From the NCBI RefSeq assembly GCF_001194135.2, contig NC_068995.1:35847222-35911221 (forward strand): a stretch of DNA of 64,000 nucleotides. The letters are read 5' to 3'. Of the stretch, positions 15,571 to 60,333 are shown one piece after another; the first letter of the stretch is position 1; each line of letters begins with the position of its first letter. The translations under genes and the position numbers were made by a program. The notes beneath the pieces were generated by a model, which saw only the letters and a program-made list of their open reading frames with translations, made no database searches and was not told the DNA's origin. This DNA is from Octopus bimaculoides (lineage: Eukaryota).

Positions 15571-15675
15571 TGAATCCTTGTGTGGCAATCTGAGCATCAT
15601 CAGTGTTAATTTCATACCGATTCCGCAGTGAGGCGTAATCTACAGACATTGGATCCCAGTTGAGCAGTTCCAGTT
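15571..15675 (-). CDS. Tudor gene coding exon 8 (ELELLNWDPMSVDYASLRNRYEINTDDAQIATQGF)
   Basis: Acceptor ttttatttctttatag|, donor TCA|gtaagt; 105 nt, phase 1 to 1; no stop codon, so the gene continues. Confidence 0.88.
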
Positions 15676-57600: not shown

Positions 57601-60333
57601 ACTGATGAATATAACAAGTGATTTCGAACATTATCACAAGAACACAAATATTTAACAGATACATACATACACACACACACACACATGCATAAACACAAGC
57701 ACACTCACACACACAGAGTACATAACTGGTGGTGATTTTGCTGACTCCCACAAAAGCCAATTGATTCTGGTCTGATTTGAACTCAAAACACAAGAGAGAA
57801 GATAACAAAGATAATTTCTAACAGAAGCACAAAGACAGGCACTTGGACAGTGGGGGAGGGGTGGAATCAGTTAGATTGCTCTCAGTATTTAATATTAATT
57901 TTGGTTTCAAATTTTAGCACAAAGCCAGCAATTGTTTTTGGTGGTGGGGGTGGGGGGGAATTGATTACATCAACCTAGTGCTCAACTGGTACTTATTTTA
58001 TTGACCCCCAAAAGAATGAAAGGCAAAGTCAACCTTGGTGAAATTTGAACTCAGAACATTTGAGGTTAATAAAATAAGTATCATTTGAGCATTGGGGGTC
58101 AATGTAATTGACTAGCCCCCGTCCCAAAAATTTCAGGCTTTGTGCCAATAGTAGAAAGTATTGCTAGTTAGTTAGTTAGTGGTGGTGGTGGTAGTAGTAG
58201 TAGTAGTAGTAGTAGTAGTAGTAGTAGTAGTAGTAGTAGTAGCAGCAGCAGCAGTAATAGGTTAATGGTTGTTGTGTTAGGGATACTAGCAGTAATAATA
58301 TATCCGTGTTGAGAAATACACCACCACCTGCATACTACCCCCACTACTACCACCACCACCACCACCACCACTGACATTATCAATAGTAGCAGGAAAATAC
58401 CATCAAGAGAAATGGCAAAAAACAATGAATCATAATTCCAGACATAAGAAGAATGACAACAGTGGGATAAGAGGAATAAAACTTATTTAGGTTTGGGGTT
58501 TAGTAGGAATGGAAGACAAGAAAAGTAGCTAAGCAGTTGACTGAGGTACTTACAAAATAAGACAGGATGTATTTAAGGAAATGAGTAAATTAATCTGACC
58601 AAAAGAAAGGCAAATTTGAACACTGAATACATGTTCCCTGTTCAGGCTCATATATATACAGATATAAAGGAGTGTCATGGAGACAAAGACAAGTGACTGA
58701 AACCTCTGGCGGTTTGCTGTGCTTCAGAAGACACGTCAAGCTAAGTGAAATTGTAGTCATGGCCAGTACCAGGTGACACATAAAATGCAGCTGTGCCATT
58801 GATATGTAGAGGACACCCAAGCCAGTGGCACATAAAAAGCACTCAATATACTCTGTGAAGTGATTTTTCATTAGGAAGGACATTCAGCCATAGAAACTAA
58901 GCTAAAATAGACTAGAGCCTAGTTTTGCTCTCCAGCATACCAGCTCCAATCAAACCACTTTACCCATGCTAGCATGGAAAACAGACACTGAATGATGATG
59001 ATGATGATGATATAAACTGACAGGTTTAATTCTCTACAAGATCCAGTAAGCCTTACTTTACTCAACCATAACCGTTCCATTCTCATATTTCTGTCAAAAT
59101 ACATTGACTTCATTTCTGTTAATTCTAAAAAAAAATGAAGAATTTAATAAAAATAGCATTGGAACTTGTGGAAGAGGTAGACCCAGGAAGACATGGGATG
59201 ACAATAACAAGTGACCAAGACCTTTAGCAATACGCTGTGCTTAAGGAGATTTGTCAAGCCAAGTGAAATCACAGTTGTGGCCATTGCTGGTGTCATGTAA
59301 ATGGAAACCAAGAAAGCATAGTCGTGGCTGTTGCCAACAGCATGATCTTTCAAATGTTGCGCCTCACAGAGGTAATGACAAGTGAGTGAGACCTTTGGCG
59401 ATGCAATGCTGAGAAGACTTATCAAACCAAGTGAAATCATAGTTGAAGCCGTGGCCATTGCCAGTGCCATGTAAATGGCACCCATGTCAATGGCATTTAA
59501 AAGCACCCATTACACTGTTGGGGTAGTTGGTGCTAGGAAGGGCATCCAGCCACAGAAACCATGCCAAATTAGACTGGAACCTGGTGCAGCTCCCTGGCCA
59601 ACCCATTCCAGTCAAACTGTCTAAGCCACGCCAGTATGGAAAGTGGACGTTAAATGATGATGATGTTATTGGAGCATAAATTAAAATAAAATTTTGATGG
59701 GAGATTTTATGTTATTTTAACTTTTTAGTATTTAAATCAGACATATTCAGTCAAAGTATTTTGTCTGTTTTATGTTCAAACTGGCCAGATCTGTCCTCTG
59801 ACACCAACCCTGCAATATCATTCTAAAACTTAACGGTTACCTCATCAAAATCTCATAGCTACAACATAATGCATGATTAATTCAAAAGAATGTGAATAAA
59901 AAAAGCATTAATTTTGGCACAATAATGTGAATGATAAAGGGTTAAAACAGGAGGCTTGTATCCAGGGCAAGGCAATCTCAAGTGGGTTGATATTGAAAGG
60001 GTTAAGCAGCTAATGGGTATTTTTACTTTTGTGGAGTGTCACAAAATATTTTAGAGTTGGAGGGAACTAGTGAAAATTCCTCTCTCTCTCTCTCTCTCTC
60101 TCTCTCTCTCTCTCTCTCTCTTCCATTATCTCTCACTCCTTTACTCTCCTCTCACTCAATCTGCGCATGCTAGCATGTGTGCGTGCATGTGTATATACAG
60201 GAATGCATGATTGTGTACAAGTTACCTTCAGAGAAATTTTCTGCAACAGAAACTCAATGTATTCTTGTTTTTCCAAGATATTATTCCATTTAATCAGAAT
60301 GTTTTCTTCAAACCAGTCATCAGTGAAAGACAT
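15571..60333 (-). CDS. Multi-exon gene for a multi-Tudor-domain protein (2 extended Tudor domains in window, probably piRNA pathway, Krimper/TDRD-like); 3' end outside the window
   Basis: Eight exons with GT-AG sites join in one open frame (exon end phases 0,1,2,1,0,2,1,1). The spliced product contains SPYCFWVQL...CLAPYNDGCFYRAKIV...VLYVDYGNTEVV...LPCQAICCSLANI and STPSDFYVY...CCCYDKTDQSYHRGII...VFYIDYGYIAWI...FPALAVHCTLARI, both classic extended Tudor signatures. Confidence 0.9.
17514..18332. repeat. 24-bp minisatellite (AGAGAGAAATATAGGAGAAATGGT)n spanning an assembly gap
   Basis: About 6 perfect units on each side of N-run 17661-18185. Confidence 0.95.
19994..20139 (-). CDS. Tudor gene coding exon 7 (FQQYLSPPLQVLIATLSDKK...CINYELVRLNHATLTEKSA, end of extended Tudor 2)
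   Basis: Acceptor atttctttttatgctgtag|, donor CAG|gtaggg; 146 nt, phase 2 to 1. Confidence 0.88.
20303..20670 (+). mobile_element. Abundant tRNA-derived SINE family (ggctgtgtggtaag...gcaccttgggcaagtgtctt...internal TA/TG repeat...gtcaaatgactgaaa)
   Basis: Same sequence recurs at about 7000-7350, 12180-12340, 37095-37400, 55685-56120, 63691-63870 (+) and 15940-16170, 42920-43320, 46130-46270, 61450-61680 (-). Confidence 0.85.
20855..21751 (+). mobile_element. Tc1/mariner DD37D (maT-type) transposase remnant with 3' TIR
   Basis: VWQQDSASCHTS...PPNSLDCNLLDYYVWG; 37 residues between the QQD Asp and the final Asp; ends ...actgcaccctg. Confidence 0.8.
22165..23297 (-). mobile_element. Candidate non-autonomous Helitron
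   Basis: Minus-strand 3' end TGGAATTTCCA hairpin, 9 nt, then CTAG|T at 22165; putative 5' TCTAATATAATAG near 23297; interior is CT-rich microsatellite. Confidence 0.45.
24605..25150 (+). mobile_element. Decayed R4/Dong-like non-LTR retrotransposon RT fragment
   Basis: GIRRGIFQGDTLSPMLFVICMIP...NHLLF, then DMGMEFGINK, GYKYLGV and SKLNAKNKIRAMNIW in shifted frames. Confidence 0.75.
25767..27073 (-). CDS. Tudor gene coding exon 6 (end of Tudor 1, long acidic Ser/Thr-rich linker, most of extended Tudor 2)
   Basis: Acceptor ttttgctttttaattgcag|, donor AG|gtaaaa; 1307 nt, phase 0 to 2; matches 438-aa ORF 25763..27079. Confidence 0.95.
27800..28420 (+). mobile_element. Decayed RT fragment of the same RTE-like LINE family
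   Basis: Translates in pieces to EMQFGFVQERSTTDTIFIVRQ..KYLAKNKPFYLAFIDL; many frameshifts. Confidence 0.8.
28836..29973. repeat. Large inverted repeat, arms 28836-29365 and 29431-29973, 65-bp spacer
   Basis: Arms align as reverse complements along their length, e.g. gcaagagggttagtatacttgcta / tagcaagtatactaaccctcttgc. Confidence 0.9.
31759..31898 (-). CDS. Tudor gene coding exon 5 (KVNVLYVDYGNTEVV...LPCQAICCSLAN)
   Basis: Acceptor cacttttctag|, donor AAT|gtatgt; 140 nt, phase 1 to 0; YVDYGN Tudor motif. Not in the supplied ORF track. Confidence 0.93.
32119..32186 (-). pseudogene. tRNA-like sequence (anticodon GGT, Thr), degenerate; tRNA pseudogene or SINE head
   Basis: D-arm AGCTTAATGGTAGAGT, perfect anticodon stem CTCAG-TTGGTAA-CTGAG, T-loop GGGTTTGAGTCCC; acceptor stem out of register. 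Confidence 0.55.
35143..35217. repeat. 22-bp tandem repeat (GAGGGAGAAGGGCCTAGCCAGT) x about 3.4
   Basis: Directly visible. Confidence 0.9.
38436..38649. mobile_element. piggyBac-type MITE copy
   Basis: TTAA|TCCTTTAGCATT...AATACTAAAGGG|TTAA. Confidence 0.7.
40025..41726 (+). mobile_element. 5'-truncated, disrupted RTE-like LINE (reverse transcriptase region plus 3' UTR repeats)
   Basis: ORF 40398..41099 contains VGVHQGSVLSPLLF and LLYAEDL (YADD-like). Downstream RLYDACIRTAILHGSETWAL; stops and frameshifts upstream. Confidence 0.9.
43643..43773 (-). CDS. Tudor gene coding exon 4 (RQPFVGMKCLAPYNDGCFYRAKIVNI, Tudor 1 core)
   Basis: Acceptor ttttttttatatag|, donor AAG|gtaagt; 131 nt, phase 2 to 1. 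Confidence 0.92.
45613..45680. repeat. 15-bp tandem repeat (ACCACCATCCCTGCC) x4
   Basis: Directly visible. Confidence 0.9.
47162..47458. mobile_element. hAT (Charlie-type) MITE, 297 bp
   Basis: Perfect TIR CAGGGGTTTTCAAACT / AGTTTGAAAACCCCTG; perfect 8-bp TSD CTATAGAA (47154-47161, 47459-47466). Confidence 0.92.
48695..49142 (-). CDS. Tudor gene coding exon 3 (Ser/Glu-rich linker plus first strands of extended Tudor 1, VSVCIVMSPYCFWVQL)
   Basis: Acceptor ttttcttttcag|, donor AG|gtttgt; 448 nt open, phase 1 to 2; overlaps supplied ORF 48667..48933. Confidence 0.9.
50040..51660 (+). mobile_element. Fragmented CR1/Jockey-group RT remnant (pieces at about 50040-50310 and 51105-51660)
   Basis: IRVFLTD...NSGVPQGSVL, and ILGLTMTED...HILNTAK...QQLLIIYKAQVR...Y*SHV. 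Confidence 0.65.
53577..53612 (-). ncRNA. Degenerate minimal (Penelope-type) hammerhead ribozyme motif
   Basis: CTTT-CTGTTGA-A-GAGC-ATAG-GCTT-GAAAC-GTT-AAAG; core position A6 is T. Confidence 0.45.
54020..54124. repeat. Long (TG)n microsatellite, representative of many (TG)n, (TA)n, (CT)n, (ATC)n, (AAT)n and (TAG)n tracts
   Basis: Others include (AAT)n 12352-12407, (CT)n 22731-22880 and (TAG)n 58191-58240. Confidence 0.95.
54596..55490. repeat. About 345-bp unit: full copy, partial direct copy, then inverted copy
   Basis: taatatttatccccacttaaatgtggatg at about 54639, a variant at about 54983, and its reverse complement ending at 55490. Confidence 0.85.
57324..57435 (-). CDS. Tudor gene coding exon 2 (NPGDKPSASTSIYKEVLSNLDGCYNCLVAVIKVLKYS)
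   Basis: Acceptor tttctttttctttccgaag|, donor CAG|gtgaga; 112 nt open, phase 0 to 1. Confidence 0.8.
60226..60333 (-). CDS. Tudor gene coding exon 1 (MSFTDDWFEENILIKWNNILEKQEYIEFLLQKISLK)
   Basis: Acceptor tgtttttgtctttgtag|A-ATG (exon starts 60334), donor AAG|gtaact; 36 codons, ends phase 0, in frame with the next exon. Confidence 0.75.

Follow-up and report, generated by a model that had tools for sequence, protein, structure and literature searches.

The question raised by this locus is whether a Tudor-domain gene of Octopus bimaculoides is related to Krimper, a piRNA (PIWI-interacting RNA) pathway factor known from insects. The DNA analysed was a stretch of 64,000 nucleotides of contig NC_068995.1, and "the window" refers to this whole stretch. 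On the minus strand lies, in all likelihood, an intact octopus gene of the expressed type, and the window covers its 5' two-thirds, with 8 exons and 832 codons. The gene very probably belongs to a molluscan family with three extended Tudor (eTudor) domains and a CCCH zinc finger. Most probably, this family and insect Krimper are distantly related, the family having one extra eTudor on the N-terminal side.

The gene model was rebuilt independently from open stretches and splice signals alone. The rebuild reproduced exactly the exons and the 832-aa product proposed in the initial annotation of the window. Eight minus-strand exons run from 60333 to 15571. Their 2497 nt make up 832 codons and one further base and contain no internal stop. 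The staphylococcal-nuclease-like part of an eTudor is given as SN-like. The exons are as follows.

60226-60333, minus strand: exon 1 (putative), ATG and 36 codons, MSFTDDWFEENILIKWNNILEKQEYIEFLLQKISLK; ends in phase 0 at the donor gtaact.
57324-57435, minus strand: exon 2, residues 37-74, with the conserved N-terminal helical motif IYKEVLSNLDGCYNCL at 57399-57355.
48695-49142, minus strand: exon 3, a disordered linker and then the start of eTudor 1 (ENYGLGPDL... from 48846; Pfam TUDOR from 48804).
43643-43773, minus strand: exon 4, first half of the Tudor 1 core (FVGMKCLAPYNDGCFYRAKIV...).
31759-31898, minus strand: exon 5, second half of the Tudor 1 core (KVNVLYVDYGNTE...), completing the aromatic cage.
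25767-27073, minus strand: exon 6, 1307 nt, the SN-like end of eTudor 1 (to about 26819), a linker and most of eTudor 2.
19994-20139, minus strand: exon 7, SN-like C-terminal strands and helix of eTudor 2 (...PLQVLIATL...EICINYELVRLNHATL).
15571-15675, minus strand: exon 8, the conserved 'WDPM' linker motif LELLNWDPMSVDYASLRNRYEINTDDAQIATQGF, the proposed counterpart of Krimper residues 483-512.

A pyrimidine tract and an AG acceptor precede every exon, a GT donor follows it, and the phases fit at all junctions. Exon 8 ends ...NTDDAQIATQGF plus 'A' before gtaagt, leaving one extra base (phase 1) and no stop, as the initial annotation had read it. The two eTudors claimed there were borne out by two matches to Pfam TUDOR (PF00567), at residues 187-313 and 570-699, which together score 133.8 bits (cut-off 23). 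The second Pfam match lies in exon 6 at 26305-25916, and it includes VFYIDYGY (26026-26003), in which Tyr takes the place of the cage Asn. The linker between the two domains in this exon is about 170 aa long, acidic/Ser-rich and disordered.

Exon 2 was one of five splice- and phase-compatible candidates between exons 1 and 3. It alone among them was non-repetitive and had the length of 112 nt demanded by the 832-aa count. A hidden Markov model (HMM) was built from the N-termini of eight relatives, with the octopus sequence left out. This HMM ranked the exon 2 piece first of 2630 six-frame open reading frame (ORF) pieces of the window (E=0.03), and the motif IYKEVLSNLDGCYNCL aligned to Y.DVMQ.LD.C.N.C of the relatives. 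An alternative middle exon near 51000 (ETRLAMKHC...) was rejected because no splice combination yielded the required phase, which 57435-57324 does yield.

The start of the gene is less firmly placed. Exon 1 was proposed from its ORF, splice sites and phase, and its start is provisional; its homology of only 0.8 bits counts against the model at this end. A good acceptor-like site, ttgtgtttttgtctttgtag/A ATG, was observed at 60334-60353 on the minus strand, with its AG one base upstream of the putative ATG. The true 5' edge of exon 1 is therefore undefined. An untranslated first exon may precede exon 1, which would then be internal, or the real start may lie elsewhere. The missing homology of exon 1 would also suit a mis-joined model, made of two genes or of chance ORFs among repeats, as would the exon 2/3 junction, which lies in an unconserved linker adjoining a gap. 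However, exons 2-8 align in order to single full-length proteins of eight other molluscs, a spliced transcript included, and a mis-joined model is highly improbable. Exons 2-8 almost certainly represent a real gene and a correct model.

Six gaps lie within the gene span (17661-18185, 23906-24313, 30157-30470, 36056-37035, 41727-41954, and 50581-50693). All six are intronic in the eight-exon model, at more than 1.2 kb from the closest exon edge. From the exon 3/4 to the exon 7/8 junction the spliced protein is unbroken relative to full-length homologues and keeps all conserved blocks, so a hidden exon in those gaps is unlikely. The poorly conserved exon 2/3 linker (gap 50581-50693) may contain a small additional exon.

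Constraint on the gene was assessed by comparing exon 6 with a genomic contig of a related octopus (L001). The ratio of nonsynonymous to synonymous substitution rates (dN/dS) was 0.245, at a synonymous divergence (dS) of 0.21. The nucleotide identity of 89% continues into the introns, and the contig is therefore genomic, not cDNA. A genomic ORF from a related octopus was the sole match in a word-indexed protein search with exon 6. On this sequence comparison, exon 6 is under purifying selection. A pseudogene was rejected on the basis of the open frame, the intact splice sites, and the dN/dS of 0.245.

Relatives were searched for with HMMER among 1.84 billion representative proteins, with the 758-aa product of exons 3-8 as the query. 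A total of 1819 matches was obtained, mostly giant proteins with 10-18 Tudor domains whose scores are summed domain by domain. A small subset of 1200-1850 residues was collinear with the query in two or three stretches. In this subset, residues 238-963 of P0012 matched residues 72-758 of the query with 37% identity (E=2e-105), and P0067, P0146 and others gave matches of the same kind. The subset is molluscan. The sequences of Haliotis asinina (XP_067684612.1), Argopecten irradians (XP_069142431.1), and Mytilus edulis (XP_071178897.1) are labelled 'tudor domain-containing protein 1-like' by NCBI. That of Aplysia californica (XP_012936023.1) is labelled uncharacterized; those of Patella, Pinctada, Sinanodonta, and Solemya are labelled hypothetical; and fragments carry the NCBI label 'TDRKH-like'. 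The family is already in the databases, under uninformative or misleading names.

In P0012, an unbroken ORF of 3771 nt lies on an RNA-type contig of 4040 nt. Such 4-kb contigs were assembled from many sequencing runs, and the uninterrupted ORF therefore represents a spliced mRNA. Homologues matched exons 3-8 each in order by tblastn, and P0012 was the closest, with 46-62% identity in four of six coding-exon matches and 27-32% in the other two. The identity was 46% over 52 aa for exon 3 and 62.5% over 48 aa for exon 5. P0012 is probably from another cephalopod.

Nine collinear relatives were retrieved: P0012 and the sequences from Haliotis, Argopecten, Mytilus, Aplysia, Patella, Pinctada, Solemya, and Sinanodonta (P0100). 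The multiple alignment was collinear from the N-terminal helical motif through the end of exon 8. The octopus product and the relatives have in common the motif Y..V...LD.C.N.C, two eTudors in the same order, WDPM...GF/Y, and the phase-1 intron. Overall identity was 22-32%, rising to 50-62% for exon 8 and the Tudor cores. The octopus protein is strongly diverged, with shorter linkers and with Tyr in Tudor 2 where most relatives have Asp. The relatives also have a zinc finger, a Tudor 3, and a C-terminal ...VPG, whereas the portion of the octopus gene in the window has none of these. The N-terminus is helical-looking, conserved within molluscs, and covered by no Pfam family. These shared features are consistent with the very probable membership of the octopus gene in the molluscan three-Tudor/CCCH family.

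The segment encoded by exon 8 links the octopus gene to the zinc finger of the relatives. It was present in eight of the nine relatives with the family motif WDPM.(E/D)(D)(Y/F).S.RNSY..D.DD.GVA..G(Y/F). Octopus exon 8 fits WDPM..(D/E)(Y/F).S.RN.Y..D.DD..(V/I)A..G(Y/F) and ends at the phase-1 intron. In all eight carriers a CCCH finger (C-x7/8-C-x5-C-x3-H) follows the motif, directly or after a short variable stretch, preceded in six of them by the lead-in (K/Q)D(E/D)x(K/R/Q)IC. A third eTudor and then the C-terminal ...VPG lie downstream of the finger in the motif carriers. The earlier proposal that exon 8 is the linker before a zinc finger is thus supported by these relatives. The exception is P0100 (Sinanodonta woodiana KAL3852582.1), a predicted protein that is otherwise collinear and lacks both the WDPM motif and the zinc finger. 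Two small exons missed by the gene predictor are the likely cause, rather than a true loss.

The intron after the motif was also seen in other genomes. Short exon ORFs from many genome assemblies end ...GVATVGY and then SK. These GY-SK endings correspond to gtaag read through, and the phase-1 intron after GY/GF is therefore conserved. The zinc-finger exon of another genome (P0185, on contig L002) reads ...EVEDELKICKFFRDGRKCWLGNRCPYKHIRLAE and starts exactly after the conserved intron. It lies at 7184-7396 of L002 (ENA ERZ21867824 ctg94649l), and EVEDELKICKFFRDGRKCWLGNRCPYKHIRLAE is 83% identical to P0012. L002 has no nucleotide similarity to the window, repeats included, so its source is not a close octopus relative. 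No second family exon was found in 17.4 kb of L002 (flanks of 7.2 and 10 kb), which again indicates long introns. A motif subgroup that starts WNPMEEDY/F in place of WDPM was observed as exon ORFs of large eukaryotic assemblies, on ENA contigs of up to 7.6 Mb (P0177, P0184, P0188, P0193, P0205, and P0206). Through this subgroup, the family may extend to further taxa beyond molluscs.

The window itself speaks against a three-Tudor octopus protein in that the finger was not seen in it. A six-frame pattern search of the window gave no CCCH finger, microsatellite junk aside, and tblastn with the nine homologues found no zinc-finger or Tudor-3 exon in 1-15570. The sole gap in that interval (13564-13666) is flanked by microsatellite. 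The three-Tudor architecture is therefore taken from the relatives. They carry the finger and the third eTudor that the initial annotation had expected, and also the motif (R/K)PxDE..C-x-C-x-C-x-H that it had named for the next exon; the corresponding octopus exons lie outside the window. Introns in this gene reach 11.7 kb, so the next exon is probably beyond the left edge, and the remaining exons (zinc finger and Tudor 3) most likely lie left of the window. The next exon would be a phase-1 exon completing A/NN (the slash marks the intron) and encoding about 33 aa like (K/E)V(K/E)DE(I/L)KICKFFRDGRKCW.G..CPYKH.

The missing exons could also be explained by a truncated or decaying octopus paralogue that ends after exon 8 and gives a two-Tudor protein, or none. 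No downstream exon was detectable in the 15.5 kb left of exon 8, and the protein databases searched gave no octopus full-length protein or transcript, only the exon-6 ORF of the related octopus. Such a paralogue is at odds with the lack of a stop in exon 8, whose strong gtaagt donor stands at the conserved phase-1 intron position, and with eight open exons, intact splice sites, and the dN/dS given above. The 11.7-kb introns also make an intron of more than 15.5 kb plausible, and the left flank is full of transposon fragments. Truncation or decay is therefore considered improbable, and an intact gene continuing to the left is preferred.

The Tudor domains of this gene were compared by their aromatic cages. 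Tudor 1 has an intact cage of Y,Y,Y,Y and Asn, and Tudor 3 of the relatives has a canonical cage with Asn. Octopus Tudor 2 keeps Y,Y,Y,Y, with Asn changed to Tyr. At this position of Tudor 2, DFGD was found in six of eight molluscan sequences, Tyr in octopus, and Asn only in P0012. Cage position 1 of Tudor 2 is non-aromatic in most relatives.

The fold of Tudor 2 was modelled with AlphaFold2 for residues 566-832 from a 32-sequence alignment. The model showed a complete eTudor with a mean predicted local distance difference test score (pLDDT) of 87.4. An earlier run with the 9-sequence family alignment gave a pLDDT of 55.6 and was unusable. Foldseek matched the Tudor 2 model to the eTudors of Papi, TDRD1, and TDRD2 with E of about 1e-15 over about 230 columns. 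The best fold matches were Papi, BmPapi, TDRD1, and TDRD2, with a target template-modelling (TM) score of 0.77-0.88. The octopus protein searched against the PDB matched Papi best (E=5e-12), followed by BmPapi, TDRD1, TDRKH, and SND1, with Krimper eTud2 at E=0.002. The Tudor-3 profile of the relatives matched TDRKH with E=3e-30.

TDRKH/TDRD2 and Papi were thus the best solved matches for Tudor 1, for Tudor 3 of the relatives, and for the Tudor 2 fold. TDRKH and Papi each combine KH domains with a single eTudor and so differ from the molluscan proteins, with their three eTudors and CCCH finger. TDRD1 is likewise a multi-eTudor PIWI-binding germline scaffold, and its eTudors ranked high both by sequence and by fold. 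Its four eTudors are accompanied by an N-terminal MYND finger. In the molluscan family the N-terminus is helical instead, and a CCCH finger separates eTudors 2 and 3. No Pfam match to a MYND finger or a KH domain was obtained, either with the octopus product or with the four full-length relatives compared.

The order of parts in the family was then compared with that of Krimper. Krimper consists of an N-terminal helical self-association region, an eTudor with a non-canonical arginine pocket, a helical segment, a CCCH finger, and a canonical eTudor that reads symmetrically dimethylated arginine (sDMA) (PMC12526068, PMC8249470), and the architecture given in the initial annotation agrees with that described in PMC12526068. 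A 2025 survey (PMC12147562) places Krimper among the germline-type Tudor proteins, with ZnF-CCCH (a CCCH zinc finger) and without a human counterpart. No other germline-type Tudor protein is listed with such a finger in the gene table of that survey (PMC12147562). The molluscan family has the same order of a helical-looking N-terminus, an altered-pocket eTudor, a latch or linker, a CCCH finger, and a canonical eTudor that would read sDMA. In both, another residue stands in place of the cage Asn in the eTudor that precedes the finger: Glu in Krimper, Tyr in octopus, and Asp in most relatives. The rest of the pocket differs between the two, so the alteration is not of one kind. The pocket of Krimper eTud1 reads D,T,L,F, and its DFGE places Glu402 at the position of the cage Asn, consistent with the published description (PMC8249470).

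Structures of Drosophila melanogaster Krimper have been reported as PDB 7cfb/7cfc/7cfd (PMC8249470, PMC12526068). In apo eTud1, a latch helix (Krimper 484-511) fills the Ago3-binding cleft (PMC8249470), and the predicted Tejas-interacting helix is Krimper 483-494 (PMC12526068). The Krimper peptide quoted in the initial annotation proved to be real, as 7cfb_A (eTud1) ends ...SDPLKAVLGFRPKD. Krimper numbering was obtained as the chain index plus 270, from the mutant names I483/L491/I494 (PMC12526068). Residues 213-242 of 7cfb_A are accordingly Krimper 483-512.

This Krimper segment, ITEDDMAMLNEIDESTSDPLKAVLGFRPKD, could be aligned without gaps to Argopecten MAEDYLSIRNSYNIDVDDPGVATVQYKAQD and octopus MSVDYASLRNRYEINTDDAQIATQGF. 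The common pattern was ED....N.......DP..A..GF(R/K).(K/Q)D, and Krimper had 9 identities to the column majority. The segment was scored with a position-specific scoring matrix (PSSM) from 19 motif sequences. Krimper 483-512 scored 35.1 (z = 6.9). When 20,000 shuffles that preserve its composition were scored in any register, only one reached this value. Among 350,028 control 30-mers from 141 other multi-Tudor proteins none reached 35.1 (maximum 27.0), and the same held for 95 control post-eTudor linkers (maximum 17.4). As a targeted sequence comparison the segment match is strong; as an untargeted search it is not significant. Profile searches were made twice with the WDPM-CCCH region, on the second occasion with the Krimper peptide as seed, and they returned short exon ORFs only.

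Several results weigh against a kinship with Krimper. The linker profile did not recover Krimper from the whole PDB at E ≤ 10. The octopus Tudor-2 core gave 3.3 bits against Krimper eTud1, and the Tudor-3 profile of the relatives gave 108 bits against TDRKH versus 19.5 bits against Krimper eTud2. In the Foldseek ranking of the Tudor 2 model, Krimper eTud2 was 24th and eTud1 46th, with TM of 0.48-0.57. Krimper eTud1 lacks three aromatic cage residues, whereas octopus Tudor 2 keeps all four. The exon-8 segment had a pLDDT of 55-61 in the AlphaFold2 model, with short helices only, a result that is neutral as to a latch-like docking. The Krimper comparison was one-directional, made against solved structures, and covered eTud1, eTud2, and the latch segment.

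Further differences from Krimper were seen in the architecture and in the segment itself. The molluscan family exceeds the two eTudors of Krimper by a third, a canonical one on the N-terminal side. Krimper does not have the W-D-P-M start of the motif and reads ...ITEDD there. Overall, the Krimper Tudor domains are barely similar to the molluscan ones (3-20 bits, TM 0.5-0.68). Fly piRNA factors evolve fast, and this weak domain similarity is therefore compatible with homology.

These differences would be expected if the family were a lineage-specific molluscan multi-Tudor PIWI-binding scaffold, derived from TDRD1/TDRKH-type eTudors, that gained its CCCH finger independently. The likeness to Krimper would then be convergence or chance. 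In sequence, all three Tudors resemble Papi/TDRKH/TDRD1 far more than Krimper, and the modelled fold of Tudor 2 is likewise closer to these proteins. The NCBI names 'TDRD1-like' for relatives and 'TDRKH-like' for fragments point the same way, as does the untargeted PDB search that missed Krimper. However, MYND, KH, and other hallmarks of TDRD1/TDRKH were not found in the octopus product or the four full-length relatives. The Krimper segment outscores all 350,028 control 30-mers and 19,999 of 20,000 shuffles. It stands at the equivalent place, between an altered-pocket eTudor and a CCCH finger, and no other germline-type Tudor protein in the table of PMC12147562 has such a finger. An independent molluscan origin of the architecture is considered unlikely.

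The distant relationship of the molluscan family to Krimper is therefore preferred, because of the shared domain order and the specifically shared latch-helix/pre-finger segment. True homology with Krimper is rather probable on these grounds, and as an explanation of all the observations together this relationship is held with moderate confidence. Of the 'Krimper-like' label given earlier, the architecture and one shared segment stand, while each Tudor is closer to Papi/TDRKH/TDRD1. The initial annotation had named best matches in another TDRD clade as evidence against it, and the Tudors partly show this by favouring Papi/TDRKH/TDRD1 in the one-directional comparison. No paper linking Krimper to molluscs was found in the literature searched.

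Solved eTudor-PIWI complexes, and Krimper itself, suggest a mechanism by analogy. The family order is an N-terminal helical domain, a canonical eTudor 1, a long disordered linker, an altered-pocket eTudor 2, the 'WDPM...GY' linker, the CCCH finger, and a canonical eTudor 3. Such a protein would most likely act as a multivalent PIWI-binding scaffold of nuage (germ granules). The N-terminal helices would self-associate. The intact cages of Tudor 1 and Tudor 3 would read sDMA in the N-termini of PIWI proteins, and Tudor 2, with its cage Asn replaced, would bind a differently modified or unmethylated partner. The exon-8 segment could serve as a regulatory latch over Tudor 2 or as a docking helix for a Tejas/TDRD5-like partner. 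Two PIWI proteins would thereby be brought together for ping-pong amplification of piRNAs, as by Krimper in flies. A Krimper-like mechanism of this kind is put forward tentatively, at slightly less than even likelihood.

The window as a whole is animal DNA rich in AT. It contains eight runs of N, many microsatellites, and introns as long as the 11.7 kb noted above. A repeat resembling a short interspersed element (SINE) was observed in about 20 copies in both orientations, with 70-97% identity, throughout introns and flanks. Fragments of long interspersed element (LINE) type and a tRNA-like match were also found. The features are listed below, beginning with examples of the SINE-like copies.

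557-705: SINE-like repeat copy.
3381-3760: SINE-like repeat copy.
14364-14834: SINE-like repeat copy.
35857-36055: SINE-like repeat copy.
52151-52284: SINE-like repeat copy.
62532-62731: SINE-like repeat copy.
40398-41099, plus strand: LINE-type reverse transcriptase fragment (Pfam RVT_1, 34.7 bits) in intron 4, with a weak PHD/C1-like cysteine-rich stretch as well.
24605-24820, plus strand: LINE-type reverse transcriptase fragment (Pfam RVT_1, 16.9 bits) in intron 6.
32118-32185, minus strand: match to the Rfam tRNA model (43.5 bits; gathering score 29) in intron 4, about 220 nt upstream of exon 5.

The gaps at 36056 and 62732 start exactly at cut-off copies of the SINE-like repeat, and these gaps are therefore probably repeat-induced. 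By eye, the ORFs at 15294-14914 (minus strand) and 41042-41326 (plus strand) resemble C-terminal parts of the same kind of LINE. ARAGORN made no tRNA call across the whole window, and 32118-32185 may represent either a degenerate tRNA gene or the head of a tRNA-derived repeat. The ORF at 13140-13484 (minus strand) contains ...FAMSINKSQGQTLKVAGL..., presumably like a C-terminal motif of Pif1/Helitron-type helicases; a Pfam search with this ORF gave nothing at E ≤ 0.01.

The results provide an exon-level model for an octopus gene that the searched protein databases did not return, and they correct the automatic 'TDRD1-like' label for a whole molluscan gene family. Should the link to Krimper fail, the family would be an ordinary additional multi-Tudor piRNA scaffold. 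Fly Krimper enforces heterotypic ping-pong between Aub and Ago3. In molluscs, PIWI proteins and piRNAs are expressed in the soma as well as in the germline. Krimper, studied only in insects and listed without a vertebrate counterpart, could be what remains in flies, in reduced form, of an older protostome family of ping-pong assembly factors, a possibility that falls a little short of an even chance. Molluscs, cephalopods included, would then keep the three-eTudor form, the latch/pre-finger helix and the CCCH finger would be the most conserved parts outside the Tudors, and a regulated hand-over from PIWI to PIWI would be conserved. The function of the Krimper zinc finger is unknown even in flies (PMC12526068), and with a true link the exon-8 segment would be a concrete candidate for a latch or partner-docking element beside this finger. 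A supposed insect speciality would then become testable in a second, distant phylum.

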